A stretch of DNA of 63,153 nucleotides, filler included, from Hyphochytrium catenoides (GCA_900088475.1; 9 parts of 9 records of this genome joined end to end with filler, not necessarily neighbours in it), one strand, 5' to 3'; shown: positions 3,146 through 44,184, counted from the first letter of the whole stretch. The notes: generated from the letters alone by a model not told the origin. Made by a program: numbers and translations.

Positions 3146-3194
<49 letters not shown>

Positions 3195-3217: not shown

Positions 3218-3573
3218 NNNNNNCCCTCACTTCCCTTCATTCTTCATAACAAACAAATCATCAACCATGGCCGTTAACGGCAAATACAAGAAAATCCCCC
3301 AATAAACGGACTGAAATCGTAACATCACTCTAAAAAGCAAATCTGGCTTCTTGAGATTATCGCCTTACAACGTATATCAGTTATTGTATCCGTTGATCTG
3401 CTCTTAGATATAGCCAAGCAGCAACACCACAGCTGAGAGATTTTCTGCTGCAATTTTAGAGATTTCACGGATTCTGATTGCCATTTCTGGAGCTTTTCGG
3501 TCGCTAAAAACAGGAGAAGGACTGGACTTCAGCCTCATTTAGTCTATAAGATCCGCTCAACCGACTGAGAAGA

Positions 3574-4232: not shown

Positions 4233-4281
<49 letters not shown>

Positions 4282-4707
4282 TCTTGGATTGTCACTGTTG
4301 TTCTCTCTGTTTCTTCTTTGTTTCTCTCTTGGGATCCCACGCTCTGTCTCCCTCTATCTGTCTCTCACCTTCCTCTCCAATTCTTTCCCCTGCTACTAAT
4401 CTCTCTCTCCCCTCTTGGGTTGTCCCTGTTGTCCTCTCTGTTTCTTCTTTGTTTCTCTCTTGGGATCCCACGCTCTGTCTCCCTCTATATGTCTCTCACT
4501 TTCTTTCCTCTGCTACTATCTCCCTCTCTTCTCTACACTCTTTACGTTCTTCCTCGCTCTCTTTCCCCCTTCTCTCTCTTTTTTTCAATTCAAGAGAGGC
4601 ACACAATCTTTCATACTCTTTCCTTCTCTTTCCCATGGACGTATAGTTTTCGACGTCCTCTTTTTTCTCCCTTCCTGTAGAAGAAATACCTAGTGTTAAA
4701 CCCCAAA

Positions 4708-4739
<32 letters not shown>

Positions 4740-7294
4740 ACTTCCTCTTTCTTACTCTACTGATCTCTCCCTCCTTGGCATTGCTTTTGTCTAACTTCTC
4801 TTCTCTCTCCTTCTATCTCTCTATGCTCTCCCTCTCGGTTCCCTCCGCTCTCCCTCTCTTGTGCGCACCTGCCTGTTATCTCTCTCTCTTTCTTTCTCTC
4901 TCCTCAGGTGTGCCAGACTCCCAGTCTCGCTGCGGAAGTGACTCTGCAGCCTCTGAGGCGGTACCGCGGAGCTCTGGATGCGTGCATTATCTTCTCTGAC
5001 ATTCTCGTCATACCACAGGTAGAGAGAGCGAGAGAAGAGAGAGAGAGAGAGTAAAATGAAGAAAGGAGAGAAATGGAAATTGAGAGCTCAGGGAAAGGGA
5101 AGAGAGCAGTCTCGTTGCTCTGAAGAGAGAGGTTGAGAGAGATTGAATGGGAAGAGACAGAGTACGAGAGAAAGAGAGAAGGCATGATGAAAGAGACAGA
5201 GAGGTTGATGAGGGAAGATGGACAGAGTCACTCACGGAGGGCGACGTTGTTGGAGGGAGAGAGAGAGAGAGAGAAAGAGCTGCATGTATGTGCTCTTTTA
5301 GCAGCCTTTCTCCATTCTTCACCCGCACTTAGCGATAGGCAAATGGGTTGTCTTCATCTTTCTCTTCTTTCACAGATACCTGTTTGCTATTGCTCTCTCA
5401 CTCTCCTCTCTCTTTGACAATTGCTGACAATTAGGCGATGGGCATGAAGATCCAGATGATTCCCAAGCGCGGCCCTGTCTTTGACGAGGTGACTCTCTCT
5501 CCCTCTTTCCCTCTCTCTCTCTCTCTCGCTCTGTTCTTTGACCCTACCACGCACGAGATCTTCCCAGCCCACATGTGGGAAGTAGAGTGGATCATTCTTT
5601 GCTCAGCGCGCGCGCTCGCTCGCTCTTTCTTTCTTTCTCTGTCGGCCATCTCGCTCTACCACTTTGTGCCGTATCTCTCCGCACTAACGCTCTCTCATCC
5701 TGTGCCCTTGCTCTTCTCACGCGCGCTCACTTGCCTCTGCTACTCTTCTACTTACTCTTTCCTTTCTTTTCTCTCTCCCTCTCTCTCTTCGATACTTTTC
5801 TCTCTCTCTCACTCACTCTCTCTGCGGCTACCCTCCTTCCCCTCTTTCTTCTCCGCCTCTTTATTACCTCTTTCTCTCTTCGTTTTCAAATCTTTCTCGG
5901 CTCTCTCTTTCTCCCCTGAATTTTTTTCGCGCTCTCACATTTCTCTCTCTCATTCTCTATTCTTCATCTCGTTTTCTTCTCTTTTTCTCTCTCTCTCCCC
6001 ACCACCCGGGACGTGGCGGGCCAGCCTCTCTCCACTCCCGCGGATCTCTCTCGTTTATCTCTCTCTCCTGACATTGAAGAAACCCTAGGTTATGTACTGG
6101 ACGCGATCAATCTGACTCGCGCGCGTATCGCGGGGGAGGTTCCTCTGATTGGATTCTGTGGCGCGCCTTTCACTCTGATGACCTACATGGTCGAGGGAGG
6201 GAGCAGCAGCACCAAGAGCAAGGTCAAGCAGTGGCTCTACAAGGTGAGAGAGAGAGAGTCAAGGGAAGAGGGAAAGACAAAGGAGGTAGTGAGCGCGAGA
6301 GAGAGAGAATGAGGGAGAGACAACGAAAACGAGGGTGGGAGAGAAGAGAGGGCGGGGAAGGTGGGTGAAAGAGGAAGAGAAATAAAATGCGACGTCAAAA
6401 GAGGAGAAGAGAGAGGGAAAACAGAGAGCTTAAGAAAAGAGGGAAACACACGGAGAAAGGACGGGAAGCATGAGACACCCAGAGAGATAATCTCTCCGCT
6501 AGCTCTTCTCCTTACCTCTCTTCTTGCTGGAACACTGTTCTCTTTCTCTCTATTTCTTTTTCCCTCTTTCTCTCTCCTTTCTTTCTTCTTTGTCGGTGTC
6601 TCTTGCCGACAGTCGCGTTAGAAGGTCATAACCCTAACTCAACCTGTGTCCCTCTCTCTCTCTCTCTCTCCTTTACTTTCACTTTTTCTTGTTTCTCTCT
6701 CTCTTCCGCTATGCCGCTTCCCTACCTCTCTCCCTCTCGATTCCGCTTACTAATTGCTTGCCCTGCCCTCTCTCTTTTCGTTTCTCATTTTGCCTTCTTT
6801 CTATCATTTCTCAATCGTCCCTCTCTCTCCCATCGACACTCTTACTCTTCTCTGTGCATTTCTCTCGTTGGTCCCTCTCTTTCCTTCCCATCACTTCGTT
6901 TCTCTCTCTCTCTCTTCTTCACTCTCTCTTTTCTCTCTCTCCCTCAGTACCCGTCTGCGTCTCACTCTCTCCTGTCGGCTCTGACCTCTGTCGCAATTGA
7001 GTTCTTAGCGGCTCAGGCTCGGGCGGGGGCGCAGCTCCTCCAAGTCTTTGAGTCCGTCGGGGCCGCGGAACTTTCGCAAGAACATTTCAACACTTTCTGT
7101 CTCCCCTACCTCCAGCAGGTGAGAGGGAAAGAGAACGAGAGAGAGAGAAAAAGGGCGGCATAACACATTGAAGAGGGGGAAGAGAGAGAGAGAGAGAACA
7201 CGACCCAAAAAATCTGTTCCTTCCGTCCTCTCTTTGGGCTCATATTCTCCGACCCTTCTGTCTCTGGTTCTGTACTTGGTGCCCAATACTCTTT

Positions 7295-7326
<32 letters not shown>

Positions 7327-8571
7327 CCCCTAACCCTCTCTCTTCCTGTCTGGCCTCAGATCGCTGAGCGTTTGAAGGAGCTGGTCCCAGATGTTCCCCT
7401 GGTCTGCTTCTCTAAAGACACGCCTCACGCTCTCCCGGCGCTGGGAAAGAGTGCCTATGATGTTATTGGATTAGACTGGAAAGTGGATCCCAAGGAAGCG
7501 AGGTCCTCTCTCTCTCTCTCTCTCTCTCTCCCTTCCTTCTCTCCTACACACACGCACTCGGGAGTCTGTGTCTATGTGTCTTCAAGTCCTTCATACACCG
7601 GTTATTCTCTCTGCCCGTTATTCTCTCTGCCTTTCCGCTATATCATTCCTTCAATTTAGTCTTTCTTTGTAAGCGCTCTCCCTTTTGCCTTATATGTATA
7701 TGTCTCTCTCGGCACTCATTTACTTCCCCTGTTTCCTCATGGATATGACGCACTTTCGCCGGCCTGCTGAAGTTTATCTTCTTGTCCTCTGTCTCTGTCT
7801 CCCTATTCGCATGTTCTTGCTATTCGCCTCTTTCCCAACCCCGCGTCATATTTCCTTCTCCTCTGTCGACAGCTTAGCGTACCTAGGGTCATGTATTGTT
7901 CCTTCGTTCCATTGAGCCTCTCTCTTCCCTTTTGTCTTTGTCTTTCCCCTGTGTCTCTCTCTCTCGCTCTTCTTCTCTTAGACGGCTGGTGGGTCCCAAT
8001 AAGACTCTGCAAGGAAACATGGACCCGATCGCACTCTTTGCTGATCCACCGGTTATAAGGGAGGAGGTAAGAGAGAGAGCTGAAAAGAATGCAAAGGAGA
8101 GAGTGAAAAAAGGAAAAGTTACTTCTTCTCTCCTCTTTCGCCCTCTTCTTACCCTCTTCCTCCCTTTTGTGAATTTGAGCCTCTCTCTCTCTCTCCACAC
8201 TCCCTCTCTTGTCTCTAGCTTTGTCCGTTTAAGGTCTAGGCCACACATGTGAATCACTTCTTCCTCTCTCTCCCGCTCTCGCTACCTATTCCCTCCGTCT
8301 CTCCTCCCTATACCGACTAACTCTCAATTCCTTTCTCTCACTCTCTGTCTCACTTCTTCGGTCTCTCTCATACCTCTCTCTCTCTCCCTCTCCCCTCTCT
8401 CTCTTTTCCCTTCTTCTCTCTCTGCAGGTGGCGAAGATGGTCCATTCCTTTGGGACGCAGCGCTATATCGCCAACCTAGGTCATGGGATCAGCCCAGACC
8501 ACCTCCCGGAGCACGTCAGAGCCTTTATGGAGGCGGTCCACTCTGTCTCGGAGGCGGCCAACAGGGACTAG
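3574..8571 (+). CDS. UROD: Uroporphyrinogen decarboxylase, eukaryotic host type, with N-terminal hydrophobic extension; exons 3574-3680, 3990-4209, 4908-5018, 5435-5488, 6025-6243, 6948-7118, 7360-7502, 7982-8066, 8428-8571
   Basis: Spliced product contains [88 protein letters not shown] and YIANLGHGI. All 8 introns are GT-AG and phase-compatible. Exon 1 is the least certain. Confidence 0.95.
4284..4500. repeat. ~85-bp direct duplication (period ~131 bp) in UROD intron 2
   Basis: TTGG(A/G)TTGTC(A/C)CTGTTGT...TCTTGGGATCCCACGCTCTGTCTCCCTCTAT.TGTCTCTCAC occurs at ~4284 and ~4415. Confidence 0.85.
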
Positions 8572-21575: not shown

Positions 21576-22151
21576 TTAGGGCTCCTTGTTATGGATGGTT
21601 GTGAGATAGTCGTGAAGCTGGTCGAAAGAGCCTTTGCAGCCGAGACGCATGGCCTCCAAGCTTTGATTGAACGTCTCAATCTCCTCATCTGAGGCTTTAT
21701 AAGGGACAGTCAGCATGTCAATCATGGTCTTCTTCCCACCGCTGGTCTCTTTAAAGGAGACAGTGGCTTTCAGGTACATCGGCCACGTGGCAGAGAGAGG
21801 ATGCTTGATGTCGTTGCCATTCTCGTCAGTAAAGCTGACAATATACGTCATCTCTTCCGGAGCTCGTACATCCAAGTACGTGAGCTTGCCATGCCAAGCT
21901 TCCTTCTGTCCTGGAGCTTTCATGGAGTATCTGAACTCTCCTCCTGGACGGCAGTCAAGGTTAAGCACCGAAGTAGACGAGCCCTTGCAGCCCCACCAGC
22001 CCTCTAGGTGCTCGGCTTGGCAGTAGGTGTTGAAGACAAGATCGCGAGGTGCGTCAAACTCTCTGCTGGCAGTGAACTCCAGGGCTTTCTTCTTCAAGGT
22101 CGGCTCTTCCGTGCGTGGAACCAGGTGCTGCTGCTCTAGTACTTCGGCCAT
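21576..22151 (-). CDS. SRPBCC/AHSA1-like (CalC/Aha1-like, START-fold) protein, intronless, bacterial type; copy 1
   Basis: 191 aa with SREFDAPRDLVF, HLEGWWG, LDCRPGGEFRYSM, IVSFTDENG, HPLSATWP and SFDQLHDYL. Confidence 0.9.
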   Translation of the reverse strand: MAEVLEQQHLVPRTEEPTLKKKALEFTASREFDAPRDLVFNTYCQAEHLEGWWGCKGSSTSVLNLDCRPGGEFRYSMKAPGQKEAWHGKLTYLDVRAPEEMTYIVSFTDENGNDIKHPLSATWPMYLKATVSFKETSGGKKTMIDMLTVPYKASDEEIETFNQSLEAMRLGCKGSFDQLHDYLTTIHNKEP

Positions 22152-22633
22152 CTTGCCACTTATAAGGCTTTAGCACGTTTGATTTGTTTGTGGGAAAGAG
22201 AGCCCCTTCCTTTGATCGCGAGGTAGCAGGCGCTGGACAAAGACGTGGGATGGATGATAGGTTATTGTTGATGCTTGAGCTCCAGGAAGAATTTTCAGGA
22301 GTGAGCCTTCCTCCTTCTGCTGATGTGCCATCCTCAACGACTCATGCTCGAGGAGAGCAGAATAGAAGGACGACGGAGGAGAGAGGAAAGAAGAAGTAGC
22401 AATCTTCACGAAGGCCTTCGAGCATCCTTCTTCTATTCTTCTCTGCTGCAGTGTGCCGTGTGCCGATAAACGAAGAGCCTTTCCCTGGAGAAAAGGCGGG
22501 AGGATGGATGCAGGTGGCTTCTTGATGATGGCGGCGGGAAACAAGGAAGAATGAGGAAATGGGTTGGGAGACAGTGGACGGATGAGATGGAGACAGACGA
22601 GAGAGAGAGAGAGAGAGNNNNNNNNNNNNNNNN

Positions 22634-22675
<42 letters not shown>

Positions 22676-23697
22676 GCTAGAGCATAGAATAACGGGTGGG
22701 AAATAAGGGGGGAAGGGCTCGCACAACAACAAGGACCCACACTCCTTTCCATCTGCTATTGTGCTGGGTAGAACTGCTACTTACCGAACCTGCTTCGGTA
22801 AATTATCTGACTAAACATTATCTAACCCAGCGAGCGGTATATACCGTACGAATTGACCATCACTCTCACTTATATACTGCTTACAGTGGTTTGGATCCTT
22901 TTCCGAGTAAAGCTGGGAGTGACTGTCCCTAGGGGTAGAAACCACTTTGGGCTGTTTAAAATTCGTTCGTTCTCTTTACTATGAGACAGCCGCCTTCCCT
23001 ACCTTTATCTCTCTGGCTGTCTCCTCTCTCTCGTTGTCTCTCTATCTCTCCCTCTCCCTCTTTCTCTCTTTCTATCATCTCTGTCTCTCTCTTTATCTCT
23101 CTCTGTCTGTCTCTCACTCTATCTCCATCTCTTTGTCTCTGTCTGTCTGTCTCTCACTCTATCTCCATCTCTTTTTCTCTCTCTGTCTCTCACTCTGTTC
23201 CTCTCTCTTTTTGCTCTCTCTCTTTTTCCTCTCTCTCTCTCTGTCTCCTCTCTCTCTCATGACCCTTATTTTTCGGATCCCACCATCATAACGACGGCGC
23301 CAACCATCATTCTTCCAACATCCTTCCACTCGCTTCGTCGTCTGTTCCGTCCAGCAGCAGGATACTGTACCAGGTCCCGCCCGCTTTCCCTCTTTCTTCT
23401 TGAGAAAGAAAGGTGACAGGAGGCCAAGATCGCCTACGCCCAGCCTGCAGACAGTCCTTTCTCTTCAGCTCCAACAATGAGCAGGCTGAACATGTGCTCA
23501 CTCTTCAAGTTCCTCTCTTTAGCTCATTGAACATAAAGAAGACGGTAGATTAACAAGCAGACAAGCGAACCAACCAGAAGTCTGTTTGCTATCTCCTCAA
23601 CACTTACTAGAGGTCAGGACTCTGTTTAAATCTTCTCTCTATCAACTACAAGGCGCGTGGTCATCATCAGCACACCACCGGCCAACCAGCAAGTAGG

Positions 23698-24276
23698 ATG
23701 GCTGAGTCACCAGAGCAGCAGCAGCAGAAATCGCACAAGGGCGAACAGCCCTTGACAGAAGCAGTGGAGTTCACTGTCAGCAGAGAGTTTGAGGCACCGC
23801 GCGAGCTTGTTTATAAGGTGCATCGCCAAGAAGAGCACCTGCAGCGCTGGTGGGGGCCTAAGGGTTGCGCTACGGCAGTGCTAAACCTCGACTTTCGTCC
23901 TGGAGGAGAGTACAGATACTCAATGAAAGCTCCAGGACAAGAGGAACCTTGGTATGGCAAACTCAAGTACGTGGACATGCGAGAGCCAACGGAGATGACG
24001 TATATTGTGAGCTTCAATGACGAGAAGGGCAATGACATCAAGCATCCTCTCTCTCCAACGTGGCCCATGTACCTGAAGTCTGTTGTCTCTTTCAAAGAGA
24101 CCGGTGATGGAAAGAAGACCTTGGTGGAGATGCGGACTGTTCCTTATGAAGCTTCTGAAGAGGAGATTAAGACTTTCAATCAGGGCTTGAAGCCTCTACG
24201 TCTCGGTTGTGAAGGCTCCTTCGACCAGCTGCGTGACTATCTAACGACTGTTCATCGTCCGGCGGAACCTAACTAA
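23698..24276 (+). CDS. SRPBCC/AHSA1-like protein, intronless, bacterial type; copy 2 (divergently oriented paralog)
   Basis: 192 aa with SREFEAPRELVY, HLQRWWGPKG, LDFRPGGEYRYSM, HPLSPTWP and SFDQLRDYL. Colinear with copy 1. Confidence 0.92.
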   Translation: MAESPEQQQQKSHKGEQPLTEAVEFTVSREFEAPRELVYKVHRQEEHLQRWWGPKGCATAVLNLDFRPGGEYRYSMKAPGQEEPWYGKLKYVDMREPTEMTYIVSFNDEKGNDIKHPLSPTWPMYLKSVVSFKETGDGKKTLVEMRTVPYEASEEEIKTFNQGLKPLRLGCEGSFDQLRDYLTTVHRPAEPN

Positions 24277-25525
24277 GTAGATATAGCGGTGGTCTTCATC
24301 CTTGTGCTAGGAGCAGAATCGAAGGCCTGACTGGATGACATCATGTGCTGCTGGTAGCTTGTGCTGTCTCTTGTTTCCTCTATTCTATTTATAAAGGTGA
24401 TCGCTTACTATGTAGATCCAGTAACGAGCCTGCAGCCTTGATGGCTTCTCTATTATTTGTCTAATCTCCCCAGTGCTGGAGGTCTCATTGTCCCAGCAGA
24501 GGCGTCTTCAGAATCAACTTCATCACCAAAGCAAAGCTCAACCGGAGGAGTACTAACAACGAAGAAGAATAATGGTGGTAGGATGGAGATCAGGATCAAA
24601 AAAGCTCCCACCATTCGACTCGTGCATTGGTGTCTGTAGGGAAGAGTCGTGCCTTAGCCTGTCACCGTGGTGGACTATGATGTGTGGATCAAGGACGCAT
24701 ATTATTAAGCCTTCTTTCTTCTTCGCATCTTTGTCCATAGAAGACGACGAAGGTCTTGAAGCTTGAAGAGCTAATAGGAGCATCTCGTGTCTTCTGTGTC
24801 TCCTTACAGCCCTCGACTGCAAGACTATTCAGAGGAGGCAACAACAGCAGCAAGGAAGAAGGGACGCACACGAGATGCTGACAGACACCACGGAAGGCAC
24901 TGCGTGTTCCCGTTCCTTCGTCCTCTTCTGTCTTCTAGGCCTTATTTAGTCCTTTAGTAGACAGAAGAAGGGCCAAAAGGAGAAGCTCCGCACTGGCTTT
25001 ACAGCACCATAAAGTAGCGGATAAAGTAGCGGAGGGAAGAGGACAAGAAGAAGAAGCATCTTCTTTACTTCTTTGTTCTGTGTCGATGACAGAAGAAGAG
25101 GAGACGGCTTGTATTTTTATAAAAAATTGCAGAAGGTCAAGGAAGAAGACGGGAGAAGCAGCGGTAGCCAAGAAGAAGTCAAGACCAAGAGGCAGTGTTC
25201 AAAAGTAAGCTCGACCGAGGTGATGGAGAAGAAGAGTGCTAAGTTCCATCAAACAACAGAAGATACTTTTCATAGAACTAGTGTGGCCCTTCGGCTTATG
25301 TCAGGTCGAAGGCAGAGAGAGAGAGAGAGAAAGAGAGAGACACAGAGAGAGAGACAGAGAGAGAGACAGAGAGAGAGACAGGGAGAGAGAAAGTGAGAGA
25401 GAAAGAGAGAGAAAGTGAGAGAGAAAGTGAGAGAGAACGAGAGAGAACGAGAGAGAAAGAGAGAGAAAGAGGGAGAGAGAGATAGTATGTAGCATGAGGG
25501 AGAAAGAGAGAAAGAGAGAGAAAGT

Positions 25526-25570
<45 letters not shown>

Positions 25571-27306
25571 ACGACAGAATGAGGGAAAGAGTTGAACGAC
25601 AAGGGGGGACTTTCGCCAGACTCTATGCTTTCCAACCCGGAACCGTCGGCGACCCTGCCACCCCATGCTTCCTTTCCTGGTCTCTGTACTACTGCCGTAC
25701 TGAGAAGCACTTGGTACCGACCCTCGTTGCCCTAAGGGGCCAGGGGGCCTCACCCAGCACAATTTTCCCTCAATTCCAAGATCGCTTTATGGTCGAGTAA
25801 GGGTTATAAGGGTCTGATGTAAAGAGAATACGTTTGCTTAACTAGGTTAACTGACAACTATTTATGGGTCCAGTGGGAAATTTTTTTGGGGGGAATTGTG
25901 TGGGGAAAGTGTAAGGAAAGAACTCTCTCTTCTGCTACTGCCTCTTTCTTCTTCCTTCCTCTCCCTCTTTTTTCCATCGCTTCATAATAGTGGAGCCCTT
26001 CGTCTACCAGTAGTAAGTTAGCTGGTTGGCATCCTTCTTTCTTTGTCTGTCTGCCCGATTCTCTTCCCAACACACAGCTTGCTGTGCATGATGCCAGCTC
26101 GCTTCTGTCTTCTGTTTGATGAGCTACCTCGATTGCTGCTGTGGTTCTGCTACGAGTAGTGATGAAGGAAGAAGGAACTAGGGAAGGATGATGATGGGCG
26201 AGTGAGAGGACGGAGGAGGGAGGGAGGAAGTTTGCAGTCTACGGTCGGTCATCAGCTGTCCGCCCCTACTTCTCACTCCTCATTCATCAGTACTCTGTCC
26301 ACTGAGCACCTCAACCAACAAGCAAGCCAGATGGGAAGGAAAATTTGCATTGCTGATCAGAAGTCTGTGGCATTAGCAGCTTGTCAGTAGCATAGAGGTA
26401 TGGAAGCGAGCTGCTTCGGCCGCTATTTATTCTTGTTATTGTGGCTCTGGCTCTTCTCTTTCTACTGTTAGTTATCAGTTAGCTCGCTATCACCGGTGCT
26501 TATCATCATCCCGCGTCGTGATCTTTGGCTCGGCGGCAGTACCACTCACTGTCCCTTCATCTTTGTTTCTTGGGCTTTGTGTAGTATCAGGAGAAGCAAG
26601 CGCACAACAACGGCGGCAAGCTGCGCAGCCCAAAGAGCTTCAAAGATCCTCTCCTATTGGCACTCTAACTATCCCTGTTGTCCAAAGAAGAGACAAGCAT
26701 GTCATGAGCTTACATCTGGGGGCCCTCCTAGCAGCATACATATCCTCCAACTCTTCGTCTTTCGGAAACTCGCTGGAGGTCTTGGGCCAGGCTTATGACC
26801 AAGACGGGGTAATAACTGACATAGAGTCCAAAGCTTTACTTGCCCGTGTCACATGACTGTCCTCGAAAGGAGGTAGCCTTTCGAAGTGCCAAGTCCAAGA
26901 GATACCCGACGGACTTCGTTCCCTACTAGAAGAGGAAGAATAGTGCGTCTACTTACTGCGCACTTTTTCTTTGAACACTTCTATCCCCGCTTGCCTGCTG
27001 GTCGTTGTGGACTCTACTGATCGAGTGGGATGGGTATTTCTCCCAGTAAAACTACTGATAGCAGATACGTCTCTGACGACGGTTAGAGCAACCATTATTG
27101 CCTGCTGTCAGATTCAGCTGACTGAAAAGGAGAAGACGGTACTAGCCACATTCCACGCAGAAGTGTCAGGCTGGTTATCCTTCTACAAGTGAGAGTTTGA
27201 CACAAGCTGGCATGTAGCAGAGCCAAGGACCCAACACCAGCTCCGACACATCTGGATAAGGCGGAAGAACTGAGAAGAGAGAGGCTATCAGTGTTAAAGA
27301 GCAGAA

Positions 27307-27768
27307 ATGGCAAGGCGGAGGCAAAGAGAAGGTAGTAGTAAGTGGACTGAAGCGGCAAAAGAACTAGGAGAAGCTGCAGGACAGAGCGCGGTGGCGGTGG
27401 CAGCCCCAGTGGCGAAAGCAACCCTTATAAAGGCAATCGGTGCCTCTTCTGCAGGCTTAGCAGCCAAGTGCTTTGCTGCCGCTTGCATCTCTTCCACGGC
27501 CATTACGGTAGGAGCCGCAGGGGGAGGGGTTGCTTCTGTTTCGATTTTAGCGCTTCTTCAAGGTCTGGGATTGGCCGCCATAGGTGGACCAGTGGCGATA
27601 GGCCTAGCAGTTGCTGGTGCTGCTACTTCTGCGGGATCCAGGCTATACCGCAAGAGACAAAGACGGAGAAAGCAGGAGCGGCAATGGAAGAGGCTGACCG
27701 AGAAGCCGATCACAAGAGTGGCAGGAGGAGATGAGAGGAGAGAACTTAAGAGACAACTGAGACCGTGA
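27307..27768 (+). CDS. IFI6/IFI27 (ISG12)-like Gly/Ala-rich membrane protein; true start uncertain, upstream region (26.6-27.3 kb) may be a disrupted N-terminus
   Basis: AIGASSAGLAAKCFAAACISSTAITVGAAGGGVASVSILALLQGLG matches the ISG12 pattern (AMGFTxxGIAxxSIAAxMMSxxAIANGGGVAxGSLVAxLQSxG). It is followed by a hydrophobic helix and a basic tail. Confidence 0.6.
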   Translation: MARRRQREGSSKWTEAAKELGEAAGQSAVAVAAPVAKATLIKAIGASSAGLAAKCFAAACISSTAITVGAAGGGVASVSILALLQGLGLAAIGGPVAIGLAVAGAATSAGSRLYRKRQRRRKQERQWKRLTEKPITRVAGGDERRELKRQLRP

Positions 27769-29621
27769 AGCATCTAGTCCAAGGTCTTCTGTTATTCATC
27801 ATTCTGCTGCTCTGCCGCCACACGGCAATAGAACAGTGATGCTCCTTAGTATCTACTTTCTTTTTGAGGATCCATCCACCTGGAAGAGGGAGGTTGCACT
27901 TAGCTCCTTCAACCTCTACCACTGTTCCAACTAGCTCTACTACGTCCTTCTTACTGCTCACAAGAGTCAGTGGCAAAGATTCATGGCCGGTTGGTCGGCG
28001 CAATCCTGCCATATCCCCTTTGCACTTGCCTTGGCAATTCCCTCTAATTTATTACGGCTTAACCTAATCTATTTATTTCTTGATGACGCCGTCTCTATCA
28101 CTACCACCCAGCAGCCCTTGGTAGTCCGCACTTTCTATGATAGACGCAAGCAGCGGTTAGCTGCGGTTTGTTGTCAAAGCTAAGTTAATCTTCTTACCAT
28201 CAAAGAGAACGGCGCAATTGAGAGATGATAAGGGATTTTTCTCACATATCATCCTTCATCATCGCCTTCTTCTGCTCTTGAGGTAGTCGCGTCTTGTACT
28301 ACCAGGATGTGTGAGTTTCCCGTCATTTAATGAACGACGACGAGCGATTAGAAGGCAGCACTTGGCGAAGACGAGAAGATGCCAAGTGATGATAGATAGA
28401 TATCACGTACGTGCCATGCTAATAGTAAGGATCCCCATGGTCTCCTCTCTCTCTCTCTCCTCTCTCTCTCTCCAGCTGAAAGAGCCCAAAGAAACTCTCT
28501 TTGTCTCTCTCCTTCAGAATGGGTTTTCGTGTCTCAATGGCCTCCATCCCTGTCTTTGCATTGAAGCAGAAGGAGGATGACAACTGCCTCCTCGGGGTTG
28601 ACAGTCCTCGAATAAGTGAAGGTGATCCCTCTAAGGCTTCGACCCGATAGTAGGAATAATGGACAGAGGAGGAGGGTGGCCGATGGCGGGAGCGAGGGAA
28701 AAAGACGTGAGAAGCATGGGCGGGAAGGGGAAACTGAACTGAGCAGCGGAGATGACTTTGATGAATGAGGAAGAAGAAGAGAGAGAGGAGGCGGACACTT
28801 TTCTTTATTAGGACGAAGGCGAGTGCTTTCTCTCTTCTCCTGCCATCAAGAGGAAACCGTTTCTTCCCCGCCAAAACTAAGCTGCCGAAACTAAAATTAG
28901 GCAACTCTCGGCTATTTTTCGGCCAATCTACTCTTGATTTAGGATCCTTTGGTGCCAAGTTCGTGTTTTTCTTCTCTTCTCGTTGTTCTTGTCATCATTG
29001 ACGCTGCCTCACCACCGAGCTTCCTCTTCTTCTTTTCTTCTTTTCTCATCCTTCTGCTCTTCTTTTTTGTCTTCAGTCCCCGCTGTCTTTCCTCTCTTTG
29101 TGATAGGTCTTCTCAAGGATGATGATGGAGAATGATCAACACTCCTCGTTCTTCCGTCCTCCTCCAGTTCCTTTTCGTCTTCCTTTCTCTTCCCTCTTCC
29201 CACCGTCAAACGTGTCGCTAGTAGAAGAATATGCTGCTGGTGCTGAGAAGAATGGGGGCCTTGCCTCCTGCTGCTGTTACGTGCCATTGGTGCGACGACT
29301 AGAAAGAAGCCTGCTTTTCCCAACCATCGCCCCTCCTCTTCCTTGTTTCCTCTCTCTCCTTCATCGTCCCTCTTGCCTTTCTTTGGCATCATCTATCTGT
29401 CCTCGTTTTCCTTAGGCTACTGTTCGTCATTCTTCCTCCTGCTGGCCCTTTCTTCTTCTTGTTCTCTTCTTCCTTCTCTGCCAAGCACCTACAGCCTAAC
29501 AACAGAGCATGATGCTTCATTGAAGTTCTAGTCTCCCGGCTCACTTTCACAATTGCTTTGCCAGTGACAGAGGTGCTAGAAGAACTCATTGACAAGAGAG
29601 GAAAGACATTAAAAAGACAGC

Positions 29622-30119
29622 ATGGCATCTAAAGGCTCAGAGAATTGTCCCGCTGGACCGTCTGAGGGCCGTCCCTCGTGTTCTCTTTCGCCCTACCTCG
29701 TCGTACAAGGAGCTGATCGCTGCATTGAATTCATGGAGAAAGCCTTTGGTGGCCAACTAATGTGCAAGTACTATGGAGGGGAAGCAGGAGCCGAAAAGGG
29801 AACAGAGAAGCCTGCTGAGAAGGCATCCAGCGGGAAGAAGCAAGAGAGAAAGATCATGCACGCAGAGGTGCGCATCAAGGATTCCGTGGTGATGATAGGA
29901 GAAGCAAGCGACTGCTTCTCTCCTGCTGTCCCCTCTCACCTCCATCTCTATGTGGACAACGTTGATGAGGTCTACAAGCGTGCTCTATCTCTAGGAGCGA
30001 CCTCAGTGCAGGAGCCACGGGTACGAGGAGGGGATGATACTGATAAAAGAGGAGGTGTTAAGGACGTCACTGGGAACACCTGGTGGATATCTACTACGGC
30101 CCGTTCTTCCTCCACGTAG
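29622..30119 (+). CDS. VOC-family (PhnB/glyoxalase/bleomycin-resistance-like) protein, intronless, bacterial type; copy 1
   Basis: LSPYLVVQGADRCIEFMEKAFG, IMHAEVRIKDSVVMIGE, HLHLYVDNVDEVYKRALSLGATSVQEP, KRGGVKDVTGNTWWIST. Confidence 0.92.
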   Translation: MASKGSENCPAGPSEGRPSCSLSPYLVVQGADRCIEFMEKAFGGQLMCKYYGGEAGAEKGTEKPAEKASSGKKQERKIMHAEVRIKDSVVMIGEASDCFSPAVPSHLHLYVDNVDEVYKRALSLGATSVQEPRVRGGDDTDKRGGVKDVTGNTWWISTTARSSST

Positions 30120-31580
30120 TTGTAAGACAAGAAGAAGAAAAAGAGAAGACGGCGAGATGGAAGCCAGGAGGAAGATGGGAGTCAGCATGGCAAGAAACCC
30201 CGGTAGCTTGCTCTCCTCGGATGTTTGTCACTCAATAGTGGATCCATATAGTAGTTCTGCCGTAGTCCAGCTTTATTGAAGACAATGTGTCAATCAATTC
30301 TCTCTCCTCTTCATATTAATCTACATAATGTGCTTGCTGCTTGCACTCGCCTTTGTGTTCTCTATAGTGAGAAGGGGTCGTCAGCATCCTTGCAGACAAA
30401 AAATAATGAAGGACATCATTTCAAAGAAGCATCAAAGAGTTCTGGCTCAAAGATTGACGGCCGCCTACTAAGGCACAACAAGCGCTAGTAGGAAGCAGGG
30501 GAAGTGGGTTTCCCTTCTACCCCGCCCATCAAACAGCATACAAAAGCAGCACAGGCCGCCATAGTCTAACCTACCAATAGTGCGATGAAGACAGAACAAT
30601 ACAAATAGTAGCCAGGAGGGCTATTCTACTAAGAAGAGAAGAAGAGCACACAAGCAGGCGGAGCTTCTCATTGAGAAGAGAGACATTTTCTGAGGATGCA
30701 GTCGTCTAGCATACTAATAGTAGAAGATGATTGACGATGATAATGGATCGTCGGATGCTTTTTGGGAGAACAGGAGAGATAACGAAGAAGATGATTGAAG
30801 GACAAGAAAAGAGCTAGTTCTTTGATAAAGGAGTCGCGGGGCGCGGGCCGGGGCGGGAGAGAAAGGAAGCGAGAAGAGGCGCGAAGGGTAGAGGGGAAGA
30901 AAGGGAACATGTACACTTCTTGTTCTCCCGCTCAACAGCGACGGTCGTTACTTCCCGCCAAGTCCCTGTATTCCGTAGCTAAAATATCATGAGCCCAAAC
31001 CCAAATATAGTGTTTAGAGAGAATTACCTTGAAACCCCCTGACTATGCTCTAAGTCGGAAGTATATGTTAATCTCGGTTACTTGTCAATAGTCCTATTCA
31101 AGTTAGTTTCGTGCACGCTGACAGGAAGCTCCTTCCAGAAAACTGTTTTCTTCCTCGCTGCTGCTGCTGCTAGGAACTAGTCCTCCTCCTCCTCCTCTTC
31201 TTCTCATGATATAGGGCTAATGTTGGCATTGATCCTCCTCAGGATGGAAGCAGCCAAGGTCCTGCCCCCCCAGCCCCTAGATTCTCAAGTTCTTCGTCTT
31301 CCTCTTCTTTCTTGGTGGTTCCTTTCCTCACTTTAACCTCCTCCTCCTCCTCGCTTGTCGTCTCGCCGGCGTTCTTTCTTTGTCGCCTTCTGTTGCCCTT
31401 CTATGATAACCGTCTCCTCTCTCCCATCGACTCTCAGCCCGAAGTATCTGCTCAGTTTCAAGCTTTCTGCCTCAAGAACAAGCGCTGGTAAGATCTACAT
31501 ATCAACAACAAGGCGCTCAAGACAGCCGCCATCGGCTGAGGGAAGGAAGAGCAATCTTCAATACATTGAGTGAAGCGAAG

Positions 31581-32039
31581 ATGGCCTCTGAGAGCTCAAC
31601 CACATGCCCAGGAAGACGTGAGGGCTACCCGTCTCTTTGTCCCTACCTGGTGGTGCATGGCGCAGAACGCTGCATTGGCTTTATGGAGAAAGCCTTTGGA
31701 GCCAAGGTTCTCTTCAAGCATTATAGAGACGAGGCAGAAGGGACCAAGACGGAGAACTCTAACAAAACGGATAACCGACCAATAATGCACGCAGAAGTGC
31801 GCATCGATGACTCTGTCATTATGTTGGGAGATGCAACCGAAGCCTTTACTCCGGCTCTCTCGCATCTCTATCTCTATGTCGAGAACGTGGACGAAGTGTA
31901 TAAGCGTGCACTCTCCCTCGGGGCGACCTCGGTCCAGGAACCATGTGTAGGCGGAGGCATGGATCTTGACAAGAGAGGAGGAGTAAAGGATCCTGCAGGG
32001 AATACGTGGTGGATTGCGACTGCTCCATCTACGAAGTGA
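31581..32039 (+). CDS. VOC-family (PhnB-like) protein, intronless, bacterial type; copy 2 (tandem paralog)
   Basis: ATG at 31581. REGYPSLCPYLVVHGA, IMHAEVRIDDSVIMLGDA, LYLYVENVDEVYKRAL, KRGGVKDPAGNTWWIAT. Confidence 0.92.
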   Translation: MASESSTTCPGRREGYPSLCPYLVVHGAERCIGFMEKAFGAKVLFKHYRDEAEGTKTENSNKTDNRPIMHAEVRIDDSVIMLGDATEAFTPALSHLYLYVENVDEVYKRALSLGATSVQEPCVGGGMDLDKRGGVKDPAGNTWWIATAPSTK

Positions 32040-34690: not shown

Positions 34691-35415
34691 ATGGAGCAGT
34701 TCGAGGCCATCCGCAGCAAGGTTAACACCAAGCTTCAGAAGTATGAGAAGCTCAACGAGATTGAGAAGGCGACCGGCCTGGACAAATTCTTCATCTCTCT
34801 CATTGCCTCCACCATTGCCGGTCTTATTCTCTATCTCATTGGCGGCGCCCGTCTCATGGTGAACCTCATTGGCTTCACTTACCCCGCTTACCAGTCCTTC
34901 AAGGCGATAAACATGCCGCAGAAGGACGATGAGGCACAATGGCTGACATACTGGATCATTTTCGCCTCTTTCGATCTTACAGAGCAGACAACCGATCTGT
35001 TTGTTACCTGGTAAGATAAGTGATCTCTCCTAGCTGAGGAGAGACTTGTGACTAATCTTTTCCTACTTTTGTTGCTCCATGTGCTCTTATTGTCTTTTCT
35101 TTTCTTCTCTCTCTCTCTCCCTCCCGATATCCGCAGGATCCCCATGTACTATGCGCTGAAGCTTGGATTCCTCGTCTACGCTTTCCTGCCAAAGACAAGG
35201 GTAAGTCTCTTCGTTGTTCTCCAAGCGCTCTCTTGAAGCCTTAGAGGCTGATCACTTTCTCTCCTCCGCCTTTCTACTTCGCATCCTCACTCACTCTCCC
35301 TCTCTCTCTTCTCCCGTCCCACATCTTTCAGGGTGCACTCGTGATCTACCAGACTGTTCTTCACCCTAAGCTCGCGCCAATGGTCAATGGCTCAGCTCCC
35401 AAGAAGGCAGAGTAA
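34691..35415 (+). CDS. YOP1: TB2/DP1/HVA22-family ER-shaping protein (REEP5/Yop1-like); exons 34691-35010, 35137-35200, 35332-35415
   Basis: NLIGFTYPAYQSFKAI, DDEAQWLTYWII, WIPMYYALKLGFLVYAFLPKTRGALVIY. GT-AG introns keep the frame. Confidence 0.93.
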
Positions 35416-36528: not shown

Positions 36529-37564
36529 TTACTCTTTGGCTTCAGCCTTCCCCTGCTCTTTCTCCTGGTCCTCTTTTACCTCCTTCTCCCTCTCTTCTTC
36601 TGTCCTCTCTTTCTCTTTCCGTCTAACCGTTCTCTCTCTTTGTATGGTTGCGATGATGAACTCTGTCACCAGGAGAGAAGAGAAAGAGAGATAAACAAGC
36701 GTCTGGTTATAGTAAAAGTTCGAGTTTCCCGAGCCTGGGTAGAGCCAGAGGTAGAACATCAGATGCAGAAGAAGAGAACCGAGGAGGACCCCGAAGAAGA
36801 GGACATATTTTCCTCTGATGCCTGGTGACGCCAAGAGAAAAAGAGGCAGAAGGTGTGGGTGTGAGGGAGAGAGAGAGAGTGAGATAGGAGAGAATGAGGG
36901 CAAAGAGACAAAGAAGAGAAAGACAGATACAGAAGAAGGAAGAGAAAGAGAGAGAGGTGATTATGAGTCAGCTGTTAACTGGTCATCCGTACCGCCACAT
37001 GAAGAACAACGAACAAACGACAGAACAAAAAGGCTCGACTCTCTCTCTCTCTCTCTCTCTCTCTCCCTTGTTCCTTCCACAATGTGTCTCGGTATTTGAC
37101 TTACGTAAGACGGTTCGCGGGTGTAGGAGCATGAGAGTGTGGAATAGCCCCATAGACGAAAAGGTGGGATAGGGACCGAAAAGGCCGGTAAGACCCAATA
37201 GAGCCGCTGAGAGTGCCTGTGGGTGGTAACTGGTGCGAAGGCGGTAGAGACGAAGAGAGAGAGAGAGAGTCAAAGAGAGAGAGTGTGAGAGCGTGTTTGA
37301 CGCCAGACTGGACCTGGGGGAGAGAAACGAACAGAGGAAGAAAGAAGCAAACGATGCTTCCAGACCTTAGCCTAACCCAGAGCGGGAGGGTGTATATGAA
37401 GGGATGCACCGCGAAGAGGAGGGCAAAGTATCCTCGAAACCGGTCAAAGACTTCAGTGAAGAAGTACCAGAACGCTCCCACGCCTGGAGTCAAGTCAGAG
37501 AAGCGCCATTGCCAGAGATATGACTCCTTAACAAGGAAATATTAGGAGAGGGAGATGCCAAGGA

Positions 37565-37600
<36 letters not shown>

Positions 37601-39680
37601 GGAGAGGCAGGTCGTCAAACATCAGAGTAGACATACAAATTCTCGGTGACTGGAGAGACAATGGTTTCGAGCTCAGAGACAGACAGAAAAGAAGAGAGAA
37701 TTGACCGGTGAGGACAAGAGGTCGAAGAGTGCTGACGTGGTGGACAATAAGTTGAACAGTGAACAGCGAAGAGACAAAGTTTGGTCATGGAAAGGCTGCA
37801 CGCATGCTATTTTTCTCTCTTTCTGTGGTCTTTCCTCCTACTCTCTCTCTAGTGCTCTCTTCCGAGAAAGATGAGGCACCGCTTGGCTAATCCAATCGTC
37901 CGCAGTCTCTCCTTCCTTTCATCTTTTCATCTTTTAAAATCTCTCTCTCTCTTCACCCTTAAACCTTGCTCTCTCCTCCCCCTTTCTATCTTCCTCTACC
38001 GCTCCACACTTTTCTCTGTCCTCTTCTTCGACATATGTTTATACATAATTTTCCCCAATCAGCGTACCTCGAGGAACTCCCAGGAGTTGGTTAGAATGGC
38101 AGATACATAAAAGAGGGCCGCCAGCCAGGTCAGAACCAGTGAGAGAAAGAGAAGAAGGCGACGAGGAGTTACCTGCAGGAGAGAGAACAAAATGCGTCTT
38201 TAGGGTTCAAATTGAAGAACCCATCTTCGGAGGCTCGACAGAAAGAAAGAGTGGGAGAGAGAGAAAGACAGGAAGAGAAAAAGGTAGACACATGCGCCAC
38301 AGAACAGGAGAAGCAGTGACCTGCTTCGTGAGTGAAAGGAGGCATACAGGGGTTACATTGGCGAGGAAAAGAAAAGAGAGAGAGAGAGAGTGAAGAAATT
38401 CTGTCTTACCGTCCTGTCCTCCAGCCATCTAGCTCCTCTTCTCTTCCACTCTCTCTCTCTTTCTATCAAAGTTGCTACCGCAGGAATAAGGGCCGCAGAG
38501 TAAAGACTAAGGTAGCATGCGCCAGCCAGGGAGACAGAAGAAAGTAAAACGAGCCCTGAAGGAAAGAAAGAACGCGTTTATCGTCGCGAGGGGGATAGAC
38601 AAAATGCACAGTAGGCAGAGACTCGTAAGCCTATTATAATCCAAGCTCTTACTCGGTTCTCTCTCTGTCTCGTCCCCTCTTTTCTTCTTCTCTCTCGCCT
38701 CCATATCTATCTACTCTTTCGCTTTTTGCTTGTCTCTCTGTCTGTCTGTCTCTCTCTCTCCTCCTCTCTTACCCCTCTCCTTCACTCAATCACTCTCCCT
38801 CTGCAGCAGAGACACACACTCTTCCTCTTCCTGTCTTAGTTCTCTTCTTTGTACTTTCTTGGCGCCTATCAATCTTCCCGTACGCCTTACCTTTATGGCC
38901 TAACAAGAGAGCGAGAGAGACAAGAAGATGCTGCACTCCAATGGTGGACATTGCAAGACAGGAGGCCACATTGTAAGGATGAAAGAGGTAAACCGAGAGA
39001 ACAAGGTCAGGCAGACTCTCTCTTCTCAGAAGAGGAGACAATGGAACACCTTCCTCTCCTTTCACACACTCTCTCTCTGTTTCTTCCTCTCTTCCCCAGT
39101 TAAGGGCGCAGACCTTGCGAAGAAGAAGCGCTATGGCAACGTCCAGGAGAGAGAAGAGAAGAAAAAGAAGGGGAAGACTGAGCTCTTCCTTGAGAGAGAG
39201 AAGAGGATAGAAAAGAGCGAGGAGCAATGGTGGCTGATGGTAGACGTCTCCGGCATAGGGCGATAGTCCACGTTGAGCGAGGAAGAAGCTTTCCTTCACT
39301 AAAGAGATAGAACCGGGAAAGTGAGCGAGAGAGGGAGAGAGAGAGAGTGACGAATGTAAGAGAGGGAGATTAGGAGAATTAGTAGGTAAAGGAGGATGTC
39401 GATGGAAAGTAGAGGAGAGGCAGACCAAGCGGGACCTTTGGCGAAGAGAAAGAGGAGGAACTGGTGCTGCACTAGCAATGGGAGAACGAATTAAACAGAT
39501 GGAGAAGGCTCCAGAAGGTATGAAAGCTAAATTGAAGACAGAGGGAAGAGGCTGAGGCAGTCAGGAAGGAAGAGGAAGGAGTGAGATAGAGAAATCGTGT
39601 ATGTGTGTTTCTAAGATAGGGAGAGAAAGCAAAAGGAGAGAGAAAGGAGGAGAGAGAGACACACAGAGAGAAAGAGAGAT

Positions 39681-40911: not shown

Positions 40912-41848
40912 TTAACAGCAACCCTTAGAAGCCGTGGTTGTGTCCTTCCCTGCCTCTAGGTTCACAGCCTTATTTGCTCCAGTCCCAGCTCCTCCGCCAG
41001 AGGCAGCGACTTGCTTTTGGATGTCCGCGGCGATAGACAAGAACGCCTGCTCCACATTGATGTTTCCTTTTGCACTAGAAGGAACAGAGAAAGGAGAAAG
41101 ACGTTCAGACACCAGCGGAAAGAGGAGAAAGACGGTGGAGAAAGTAAAAGTGTTGGGCGTATAAAGCACCACTCCGTCCTTTGAGAAAGCAAAAACGCTC
41201 TAAGAAAAGAGTATAGTCGATGAATATAGAGAACCAAAGTTTAATAGGAGGGGAGACGGCGAGAGACGAAGGAGAGAGAGAGAGAAAGAGAGAGACGACG
41301 ATCAAGTGGGAAAGAGTGCGAGAGAAAGAGAGAAGGGGCGGAAAAGAAAGAGGAGGAAAGAGCGTCGGAGAGAGAGATAACGATTATTAGAGAGAGAGTG
41401 TGCGGACCTGGCCTCAAAGAACTTGATGCCAAACTCGTCAGCCAAGGCTTTCCCCTGCTCGTATGTCACAGCCTAGAGGAGAAAAAGCTCACGGTCATCC
41501 TTCCTGGTCCTCTGCCATTCTTCTATTCACACTCTCTCCTTCATTCCTTGCATAACATCATCAGACGCCTCCTCTTTTTCTCTATCCTCAACCCTCCCCC
41601 TCTCATATTCTCCACATCTCTCTCTCTCTCTCGCTGCAGTTTTCTTTCGACTGTCTCTGTCTGGCTCCAACTACTCTCTGCCTCAAGTTTATACTGGGCA
41701 GCTCACCCTTTCGCTGGGATCCACATCGCATTTGTTCCCGACCAAGACCTTGCAAACGGTCTCCGATGCGTGCTGCTCAATCTGCCGCATCCAGTTCCGC
41801 ACATCTTCAAGGTCAAGAAAGGAACAACGGAATGGAAAAGAGAGAGAC

Positions 41849-41880
<32 letters not shown>

Positions 41881-42505
41881 CGGTGAGAAAGAGACAGAGA
41901 GAAACGAAGAAGAGGAGGGGAAGAGAGGAGGAGAAGGAAAGAGATAGAAAGAACGACAGACAGAAACAGGTAGCCCATAGGCAAAGAATGAGAAAGAAAG
42001 ATGAGATTGCACAATAGAAAGGAGAGGAAACCTGAGATGACAGTAGGAGAAGAGTGTGGGGAAGGAGAGAGAACAGAGTGAATAAACGGAAAGAGTCACC
42101 TGTGGGTAGGGGATTATGCTCTAACGGAAGATGTAGGAAGAAAGAGGCTTGTGGAGGAAAGAAAGAGAGAGAAATAGCGAGAAGGAGAGAGAGGGAAGAG
42201 GAGTTTGGTATCTCTTACTATGAAAGGAGTTCTCATCCGTCACATCATAAATCAGGAGGATCCCCATAGCGCCGCGGTAGTACGCTGCCCCGGTGAGGAT
42301 ATAGAGTCGTTCATTAGCATCCAGGAAGACCAAAATAGAGACAGATGGCAGAGAAAGAGAGCGGGAGAGGGACACACAGAGAGAGGGGAACAGAGAGAAA
42401 GAGAGAGAGAGAGAGAGAAAGCGAGAGAAAGGGAGAGGGAGAGAGAGGGGGGAGAGGGAGAGAGAGGGGGAGAGAGGGAGAGAGAGAAAAAGCGATAGAG
42501 AGAGA

Positions 42506-42537
<32 letters not shown>

Positions 42538-42997
42538 AGCGAGAGAAGGAGAGAGAGAGAGAGGGGGGGGGAGAGACGGAGAGAGAGAGAAAGCGAGAGA
42601 AAGGGAGAGGGAGAGAGAGGGGGAGAGAGAGAGAAAGAGAGAGAAGCGAGAGAAGGAGAGAGAGAGAGAGAGGGGGAGAGACGGAGAGAGAGAAAGAGTA
42701 GGCCAAGATGACGGTAACGGCAGGAACAAGCCACAGATAATAATCTGATACGGGAACAACGCGAAATAACGTGAACGGGCACGAACAAGGTATACAAGCT
42801 GAAGTTCGCAAGAGAGAGAAGAGAGAGACAAGCGAGAGAGAAAAGAACGTAAGAGAGAGCAAGAGAGAGAAAGGGGAAGAAGTAAGTGCCCGAGACCTGT
42901 AGTGATCGTGCGAAAGCGCTCTTGTCCCGCTGTGTCCCAGATCTGAAGCTTGATCTTCTTTCCTTCCGATTCTATTGTCTTTATCTTAAAGTCAATC
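40912..42997 (-). CDS. RAB8: Rab GTPase of the Rab8/RabE/Sec4 group, 5' exons lost in gap; exons 42997-42897, 42284-42219, 41804-41707, 41472-41408, 41074-40912
   Basis: [65 protein letters not shown] and a C-terminal CC prenylation motif. Confidence 0.93.
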
Positions 42998-44184
42998 CTA
43001 TGAGACAGATAGAAGTGTCCGTGAGGGAGAGAAAGAGAGAAAGAGAGAGGGAAGACACACAAGAGAGAAAGTGTGAGAGAGAGAGAGAGAGAGAAGACAA
43101 GATATGGCGACGGACGCACGGAAAATATCGTTGCAGAGAGGCAGAGTGGGAGCAAGAGAGAGAAAAGATAAAGAAATGACGTGCAGCTGCTGCGAAAAAC
43201 ACAAATAGATGAAGAGAAAGGTAAGCTCATGCTCAAAACTGAAGATCTAAGAGAAAGAGACACACCTAAAGACACCACAGAGAGAGAGAGAGAGANNNNN
43301 NNNNNNNNNNNNNNNNNNNNNNNNNNNNNNNNNNNNNNNTTAATTAATTAANNNNNNNNNNNNNNNNNNNNNNNNNNNNNNNNNNNNNNNNNNNNCACCG
43401 AATGAAGAGATTGGGCCCGCCTTGCAGAGAGAGAAAAGCAAGGGGGAGAGCAAAAGTGGGAAGACTCTCTCTCCAGCAACAGAAAGAGTGCAGGAATACA
43501 AGTTGACCAGGAGAGAGAAAGACACCGTAAGAGCAGAGAGAGAGCAAGAGACAGAGAGGGTACGCGCTTGACTAGGCCTCAGGAGGGGAGGAAAGCTGTC
43601 CCCGTGCGTTAAGAGAGATCCGCAGGGCCTGACGCTACGTCATCTCCTTGCTCCTTTCTACTTTCTCTCTCCCTCCCTCTCTCCTTGTCTCTCCTCAACC
43701 CTCCAGCGCCTTGGCTGTCTCTTGCTTCTCCTCTTCTTCGCTCCGTCGCGAACGTTTTCATGCGATCTCTCTACCTGACCTCTATTCACCCTTCGGATCA
43801 CCTCCCTCTGTTGCTTCTTTATGTAGGAATTGTGCTCTTTCACTCTTCGTCCCCCTCTCTCTCTCTCTCTCTCTCTCTNNNNNNNNNNNNNNNNNNNNNN
43901 NNNNNNNNNNNCCCTCCCTTTCCCTCTTTTTCTCTCTCTCCCTTTCTTTCTTCCTTTCTTCTCTCTCGTCTTTGCTCTCTCTCTGTCTCTCTATGTCCCT
44001 TCCCTCGGCTCGAACCGACACGCCACTCCTTCTGCAAGCTTTAGTTCAAGTACAAGTAAATCAAGTCCAAGTTACCAGTTGGACAACTAGTACTTGTGCT
44101 ATAATTACCCTTTATAAAGGTTATACCTACTTTGTACTGTAAAACGGTAGACTTAGGACAGTAGTGGACTTATAGATTTGGAGG

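Follow-up and report, generated by a model that had tools for sequence, protein, structure and literature searches.

The window analysed here is a stretch of 63,153 nucleotides (filler included) of the Hyphochytrium catenoides genome (GCA_900088475.1), in which parts of nine records are joined end to end, and our subject is a block of five genes at positions 21576-32039, together with the probable bacterial origin of four of them. The block consists of two genes for AHSA1-type SRPBCC proteins (SRP1 and SRP2), one for a membrane protein of the Ifi-6-16 family (IFI) and two for PhnB-type VOC proteins (VOC1 and VOC2) (Table 1). A sequence-only reading of this DNA had pointed to five intronless open reading frames (ORFs) within 10.5 kb, and an ORF scan of the window recovered all five at the coordinates given in the table, intact and with zero internal stops.

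SRP1 and SRP2 are divergently oriented across a spacer of 1.5 kb and encode proteins that are 67% identical, while the products of VOC1 and VOC2 are 64% identical. The spacers among the five genes are 1.4-3 kb long and non-coding. A Pfam scan of ten further ORFs, from the spacers and the left flank, matched zero families, and we found no extra genes in the block. The Pfam cut-offs that apply to the scores reported here are 22.1 bits for AHSA1 (PF08327), 20.6 bits for Glyoxalase (PF00903) and 29.1 bits for Ifi-6-16 (PF06140). In its mechanical form the VOC2 ORF starts with a TTG at 31566 and has 157 codons' worth of protein (157 aa), but the true start is likely the ATG at 31581, to judge from the resemblance of the resulting N-terminus (MASESS...) to that of VOC1 (MASKGS...).

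Table 1. Genes and other features of the block and of the host contig that carries it (positions in the window; aa, amino acids).
Feature	Position	Strand	Description
SRP1	21576-22151	-	Intronless AHSA1-type SRPBCC gene, 191 aa; PF08327, 59.4 bits
Assembly gap	22618-22633		Sole N run of the piece; within a (GA)n microsatellite of the SRP1-SRP2 spacer; hits no ORF
SRP2	23698-24276	+	Intronless AHSA1-type SRPBCC gene, 192 aa; PF08327, 52.8 bits
IFI	27307-27768	+	Divergent Ifi-6-16 (ISG12/IFI27) membrane protein, Gly/Ala-rich, 153 aa; probably a host-type gene
VOC1	29622-30119	+	Intronless PhnB-type VOC gene, 165 aa; PF00903, 27.3 bits
VOC2	31581-32039	+	Intronless PhnB-type VOC gene, tandem to VOC1; PF00903, 31.1 bits
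REEP/Yop1 (TB2/DP1)	34691-35415	+	PF03134 match at 34883-35011; three exons
PIG-U	36691-39356	-	At least three exon blocks: 36691-36933, 37329-37751, 38892-39356
Rab-family GTPase	40912-43278	-	Several short exons, (CT)n-rich introns; GNKCD motif in ORF pieces

The relatives of the SRPBCC proteins are bacterial. A word search returned first the orthologs from a sister species, which is represented by independently assembled Logan contigs (runs SRR28521185 and SRR28521197); the remaining matches were at most 46% identical, and all named ones among them were bacterial. When 1.84 billion representatives were searched exhaustively with HMMER, 5580 matches resulted, among which the proteins' own cluster alone exceeded 50% identity and all others stayed at or below 45%. 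We looked up the sources of 19 matches, and these were metagenomes or bacterial metagenome-assembled genomes (MAGs), with zero eukaryotic sources. The alignment is collinear along the entire bacterial protein, the WWGPKG motif included, and the eukaryotic copies are longer by about 20 polar residues at the N-terminus. In a tree built from four eukaryotic sequences and 80 named bacterial loci, the eukaryotic sequences form a single clade (support 100) inside the bacterial radiation. The neighbours of this clade are a mix of Leptospiraceae, Bacteroidota, Acidobacteriota and others, at forks with 81-87% support in the Shimodaira-Hasegawa-like approximate likelihood ratio test. In the 61 Mb genome the SRPBCC family has two copies, at this locus only. 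As a side observation, the top exhaustive matches (P0242-P0389) are mostly bacterial proteins of 310-626 aa that contain between two and four AHSA1 domains in tandem, and whose summed scores exceed those of single-domain proteins with higher identity.

The VOC proteins give a similar picture. The best 120 matches of a word search are 47-55% identical and mostly about 130 residues long, and many of them are named PhnB by the Joint Genome Institute; the few that carry an organism name belong to Acidobacteriota or Myxococcota. VOC2 is 50-55% identical to bacterial PhnB-named proteins. Two features that VOC1 and VOC2 share set them apart from 24 aligned bacterial relatives, namely an extended N-terminus and an inserted charged segment of 13-22 residues. 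The invariant residues are kept, namely the MHAE motif (H75, E77), RGGV and TWW, and GGVKDP..NTWW is shared with the 24 bacterial relatives; judged by these residues, the proteins look functional. Neither is a member of the YjdN equivalog NF007537, on which they score 28.7 and 24.6 bits against a cut-off of 122. The VOC family of the window is confined to this locus, within a genome total of 16 Glyoxalase matches that includes other subfamilies. Separately from the block, the region C2848:3500-11800 holds three further intronless VOC paralogs in an array (about 160 aa each; at 1082-1564(+), 3645-4130(+) and 6648-7391(-) of the extracted region), which belong to another subfamily, score 57-59 bits on PF00903 and match Ble-like_N weakly, and contig C1976 holds two further Glyoxalase matches. 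VOC genes seem broadly expanded and clustered in the H. catenoides genome.

In neither word search (SRPBCC or VOC) did any of the best 120 matches come from EukProt, MMETSP or a named-eukaryote source, the matches including unnamed metagenome sequences. A control with HSP90 found EukProt, MMETSP and oomycete proteins present and labelled in the database. The reading that we prefer, to which we give a probability of roughly 0.7, is that the SRPBCC and VOC genes were acquired from bacteria, duplicated locally and retained, that the Ifi-6-16 gene beside them is a resident, and that the acquired genes act in the handling of small molecules. The bacterial transfer itself is well supported, and its direction is what we infer from these comparisons. 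The proposal that both families have a bacterial character and are confined to this lineage has held up, all named matches being bacterial or from metagenomes annotated as prokaryotic, and the genome having a single locus.

Several points weigh against this reading. The eukaryotic SRPBCC clade has a long stem (1.29 substitutions per site) and weakly supported neighbours, and the tree gave no supported bacterial sister group or donor clade for the SRPBCC genes. Eukaryote sampling of the databases is uneven, and the searches covered all taxa at once. The nearest bacterial identity is no higher than 45% for the SRPBCC proteins and about 53-55% for the VOC proteins, so the transfer is old or the donor unsampled. 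For the VOC genes, no sister-species ortholog was among the best 120 word-search matches, a list that was not supplemented by a dedicated search. On the functional side, the role is read from fold and family alone, and the close solved relatives of the SRPBCC proteins are all uncharacterised structural-genomics targets.

The long stem and the missing support for a bacterial sister group would also suit vertical inheritance, under which both families would be old eukaryotic or stramenopile families, lost or unsampled elsewhere, with a bacterial look that stems from database bias. AHSA1 and VOC domains do occur in eukaryotes, and this genome has many other VOC genes (the 16 matches, with the triple array on C2848). 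However, eukaryote-sourced proteins are missing not only from the best 120 matches of either search but also from the 19 that were looked up, though such proteomes are in the database. Vertical inheritance is further opposed by the full-length collinearity with standalone bacterial proteins, by the SRPBCC family having two copies only in the genome, and by the lack of introns, given that this genome averages 3.64 introns per gene (PMC5795050). We consider it decidedly unlikely.

Under the preferred reading of bacterial acquisition, an AHSA1/YndB-like SRPBCC gene and a PhnB/COG2764-like VOC gene would have entered the lineage horizontally, in one event or two, after its split from the other sampled eukaryotes. 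Both would then have gained eukaryote-style features, namely the N-terminal addition of about 20 mostly polar residues, to which the VOC gene would have added the charged loop insertion. Duplication in situ would have turned the SRPBCC gene into a divergent pair and the VOC gene into a tandem pair, with purifying selection since then holding all four copies as cytosolic proteins (a location suggested by the absence of any apparent targeting signal).

The order of these steps can be followed in part. SRP1 and SRP2 each pair in the tree with their own ortholog from the sister species, so their duplication is older than that species split; the lineage-specific insertion that is common to both VOC copies indicates that the VOC duplication came after acquisition. 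DNA similarity between the paralogs (77% and 69%) ends at the borders of the coding sequences, from which it follows that both duplications are old and that the duplication units cannot be delimited. The ratio of nonsynonymous to synonymous substitution rates (dN/dS) is 0.11 for SRP1 and 0.16 for SRP2 against their sister-species orthologs, and 0.24 and 0.17 between the SRPBCC and the VOC paralogs, respectively. The comparison between paralogs, which the sequence-only reading had proposed as a check, thus indicates purifying selection, and its suggestion that each family was duplicated after arrival and then kept agrees with the ortholog pairing and the shared VOC insertion.

The sister orthologs are 96% (SRP1, P0002) and 97% (SRP2, P0001) identical at the amino-acid level, and the sister contigs, flanks included, match the window at 84-88% nucleotide identity. 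This collinearity stops at 24944, about 670 bp 3′ of SRP2, and repeats lie beyond. Past the SRPBCC genes, the sister contigs (1773-3938 of one, 1812-5652 of the other) match many H. catenoides contigs; the repeat part of one of them gave 105 reported matches out of 1428 first-look candidates in the H. catenoides genome. These many matches suggest that the repeats belong to a dispersed family and that the neighbourhood has been rearranged.

The block lies on contig C2465 (window 17446-43295) of the 61.0 Mb assembly of 4759 records. As this is a short-read scaffold assembly with one scaffolding gap within the block, bacterial contamination or a chimeric join might be suspected. The N run separates SRP1 from SRP2, so that SRP1 and the 5 kb on its left are tied to the rest by scaffolding only. 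The gap-free stretch 22634-43295, however, holds the other four genes together with the spliced host genes for REEP, PIG-U and a Rab GTPase. Runs of (GA/CT)n with at least six units occur eight times in the spacers of the block and 43 times in the remaining contig, and the type of tract that fills host introns is also present in the 1.4-3 kb non-coding spacers of the five ORFs. GC content is even along the contig (0.47-0.54). The independent contigs of the sister species hold both SRPBCC genes beside host dispersed repeats, and the proteins have extensions and insertions that their bacterial relatives lack. Host genes, microsatellite tracts, flat GC content and sister contigs together make contamination or chimerism very unlikely, to the point that we reject it. 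The earlier claims that these ORFs are linked to spliced host genes, that they are interleaved with host-type (CT/GA)n tracts and that the contig is not a contaminant are borne out accordingly, the first of them without a gap for four of the five.

The contig is very likely nuclear and from a stramenopile close to the oomycetes, H. catenoides. The intronless gene for cytosolic HSP90 in this genome encodes a protein that shares 84-85% identity with its counterparts across all oomycete orders and about 80% with those of ochrophytes, which places the genome beside, yet outside, the oomycetes. A more distant relative is present in public reads (Logan SRR33633064), with an HSP90 that is 91% identical.

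Whether the SRPBCC and VOC genes arrived together is a separate question. The sequence-only reading had proposed that an adjacent bacterial SRPBCC and VOC pair was acquired at once on a single fragment, in which case the Ifi-6-16 gene would have been interposed later. Both families are unique to the same 10.5 kb of 61 Mb, and two random insertions so close together would have a probability of p ~3e-4 by a rough estimate of our own. A Hyphomicrobiaceae MAG (GCA_035440865.1, extracted locus 6001-7418) encodes a 304-aa fusion of AHSA1 and a PhnB-type VOC domain (P0075), with a second PhnB-like gene directly next to it, and this fusion is a natural link of the SRPBCC and VOC folds. In addition, a VOC gene immediately adjoins four of the 80 closest SRPBCC loci. 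These adjoining VOC proteins, however, are just 29-32% identical to those of the window, compared with 50-55% for the best relatives, so that no VOC of the close type stands beside any of the 80. Of the 40 genomes from which the closest SRPBCC genes come, nine have a closer VOC gene (38-47%), in none of them inside the 20 kb locus around the SRPBCC gene. Among Acidobacteriota, the VOC type of the window (at most 53% identical) is present in 24 of 151 genomes, and a related SRPBCC gene in five of these 24, always on another contig. In these 33 genomes taken together, VOC genes of 38-53% identity never stood next to a close SRPBCC gene. Four contexts of the closest VOC relatives were without an AHSA1 gene within 5 kb. 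Within the block itself, a host gene stands between the SRPBCC and VOC pairs, and the synonymous divergence (dS) of the two paralog pairs differs, 0.79 versus 1.53.

The closest-type genes are thus unlinked wherever both are sampled, which leaves the single-fragment scenario unsupported, and we regard it as rather unlikely. The expectation that both genes would nest in a common bacterial clade in which they are adjacent fares no better, since the SRPBCC tree does not resolve a donor clade and the adjacency was not seen. An unsampled donor, a preferred landing region or later clustering may each explain the co-location.

The middle gene of the block appears to have a different history. IFI scores 23.4 bits on PF06140, under the cut-off, and in a language-model search its ten nearest Atlas clusters were all Ifi-6-16, the nearest being fungal (score 0.87). 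Elsewhere in the genome it has paralogs on contigs C269 (50% identical, 68.5 bits) and C3573 (33% identical, 58.6 bits on Ifi-6-16), and it had zero matches in the 80 bacterial SRPBCC loci. By these sequence comparisons, we take IFI to belong, as a diverged copy, to a host family already resident in the genome, which would put it outside the transfer. It resembles Ifi-6-16/ISG12 proteins in its Gly/Ala-rich membrane core of four segments, but differs from them in its score below the Pfam cut-off and in its basic N- and C-terminal tails. To our knowledge this organism has no interferon system, so the name Ifi-6-16 implies nothing about immunity. The description of IFI as an innate-immunity-like membrane protein accordingly comes down to a family name and is overstated. 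In the paralog on C3573 (302 aa, at 1300-2208 of the extracted region), the Ifi-6-16 domain spans residues 78-157, and the protein then runs on in a long C-terminal part.

Predicted structures bear on what the acquired proteins might do. The AlphaFold model of SRP2 (mean predicted local distance difference test, pLDDT, 88.4) shows the helix-grip fold of SRPBCC proteins, in which a long C-terminal helix packs against an antiparallel sheet. Its top fold matches are all AHSA1-like, with target-normalised TM-scores of 0.74-0.86, and its nearest solved structures are uncharacterised bacterial or archaeal AHSA1-like proteins, then the ligand-binding PYR/PYL and Bet v 1. The bacterial AHSA1/YndB-like proteins (PF08327, COG3832), which include Ms6760 (3uid), MM0500 (1xuv), AAur_3427 (2ldk), NE0264 (1xfs) and CHU_1110 (2lf2), share with the window proteins full-length collinearity, WWGPKG and the helix-grip fold, at 40-46% identity to the best relatives. 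The window genes differ in being nuclear-encoded, in the N-terminal extension, in the WWGCKG variant of SRP1 and in having no ArsR-type neighbour or operon.

The model of VOC2 (pLDDT 86.9) has the paired beta-alpha-beta-beta-beta fold of VOC proteins, and a fold search gave 218 PDB matches at E <= 0.001, all of which, among those listed, are VOC proteins. The nearest solved structure is TioX (3itw; E 9.5e-7 by profile, E 1e-8 by fold), followed by B. cereus PhnB, E. coli glyoxalase I, PA1353 and PA1358, with TnmS1 and FosX lower; identity to all of these is 12-23%. The window VOC proteins share the paired VOC fold with TioX and with PhnB/COG2764 proteins (B. cereus PhnB 3oms, PA1353, PA1358), but differ from these in their low identity to solved structures (17-23%), in their charged insertion and in having no biosynthetic cluster nearby. 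TioX binds thiocoraline, and TnmS proteins sequester enediynes. These relatives make a binding or resistance role possible, though they do not specifically indicate one, and the likeness to TioX, a remote one, is the sole hint of antibiotic binding.

A comparison had also been drawn between the SRPBCC proteins and CalC. We rejected this candidate, as CalC appears neither among the PDB profile matches (E <= 1e-5) nor in the fold search's top 50, with no relationship detectable by either route, and the window shows no enediyne cluster. What the window proteins have in common with CalC and the bleomycin-binding proteins is the broad SRPBCC and VOC folds, TnmS1 and TnmS3 being among the VOC fold matches; CalC, by contrast, is not among the solved relatives, and a Pfam search for Ble-like_N (PF22677) gave no match in the window VOC proteins. 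No biosynthetic gene cluster was found in the window.

Cytosolic binding or detoxification of small molecules may be the likeliest role of the SRPBCC and VOC proteins, and on the strength of the models and families we put this at about even odds. The SRPBCC cavity would bind a hydrophobic small molecule, and the VOC protein would bind or transform a small electrophile or aromatic compound, so that an osmotrophic saprotroph would have taken over a role that soil bacteria have in handling xenobiotics or metabolites. By analogy with resistance proteins of these folds, sequestration of an antibiotic would be a speculative further step. Going further still, both families could have arrived jointly, or been gathered by selection, and could form with the Ifi-6-16 gene a co-regulated island of chemical defence, in which a hydrophobic toxin or antibiotic made by bacteria is caught by the SRPBCC pair and sequestered or inactivated by the VOC pair. 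We think this quite unlikely; if true, a saprotroph in competition with soil bacteria would have a eukaryotic gene cluster assembled from parts of bacterial resistance type.

Reported cases of horizontal gene transfer in oomycetes mostly concern secreted enzymes and transporters, whereas the proteins described here appear to be cytosolic and ligand-binding. Acquired genes for cytosolic small-molecule binders, rather than for the usual secreted enzymes, may be a sign that hyphochytrids and soil bacteria interact chemically. In other respects the locus resembles known transfers from prokaryotes to pseudofungi, with small intronless genes of bacterial type among host genes in an osmotrophic stramenopile, duplicated after arrival. 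As a case of bacteria-to-eukaryote transfer with local duplication, it is solid but fairly ordinary. It provides a physically anchored acquisition of bacterial genes in the lineage sister to the oomycetes, for which few genome data exist, and illustrates duplication and long-term retention after transfer. The co-location of these genes within 10.5 kb, set against their unlinked bacterial counterparts, also raises the question of whether transferred genes land in, or gather into, particular regions. Transfers from prokaryotes to oomycetes are established (review PMC4447370), and prokaryotic transfers have been discussed for Hyphochytrium (PMC5795050); in the literature that we searched, we found no mention of these two families.

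The three host genes to the right of the block were examined exon by exon. The REEP gene has exons at 34691-35010, 35137-35200 and 35332-35415, separated by GT-AG introns of 126 and 131 bp that were read from the sequence. The PIG-U blocks score 86, 64.7 and 42.9 bits against PF06728, a family with zero matches in 14 bacterial and archaeal control genomes. In this contig, (CT)n microsatellites often lie immediately 5′ of intron acceptors, within the polypyrimidine stretch (for example at 35100-35136, 35290-35331 and 42121-43278), and their position at acceptor sites accounts for the SLSLSL or RERERE runs in nearly every mechanical ORF of the contig.

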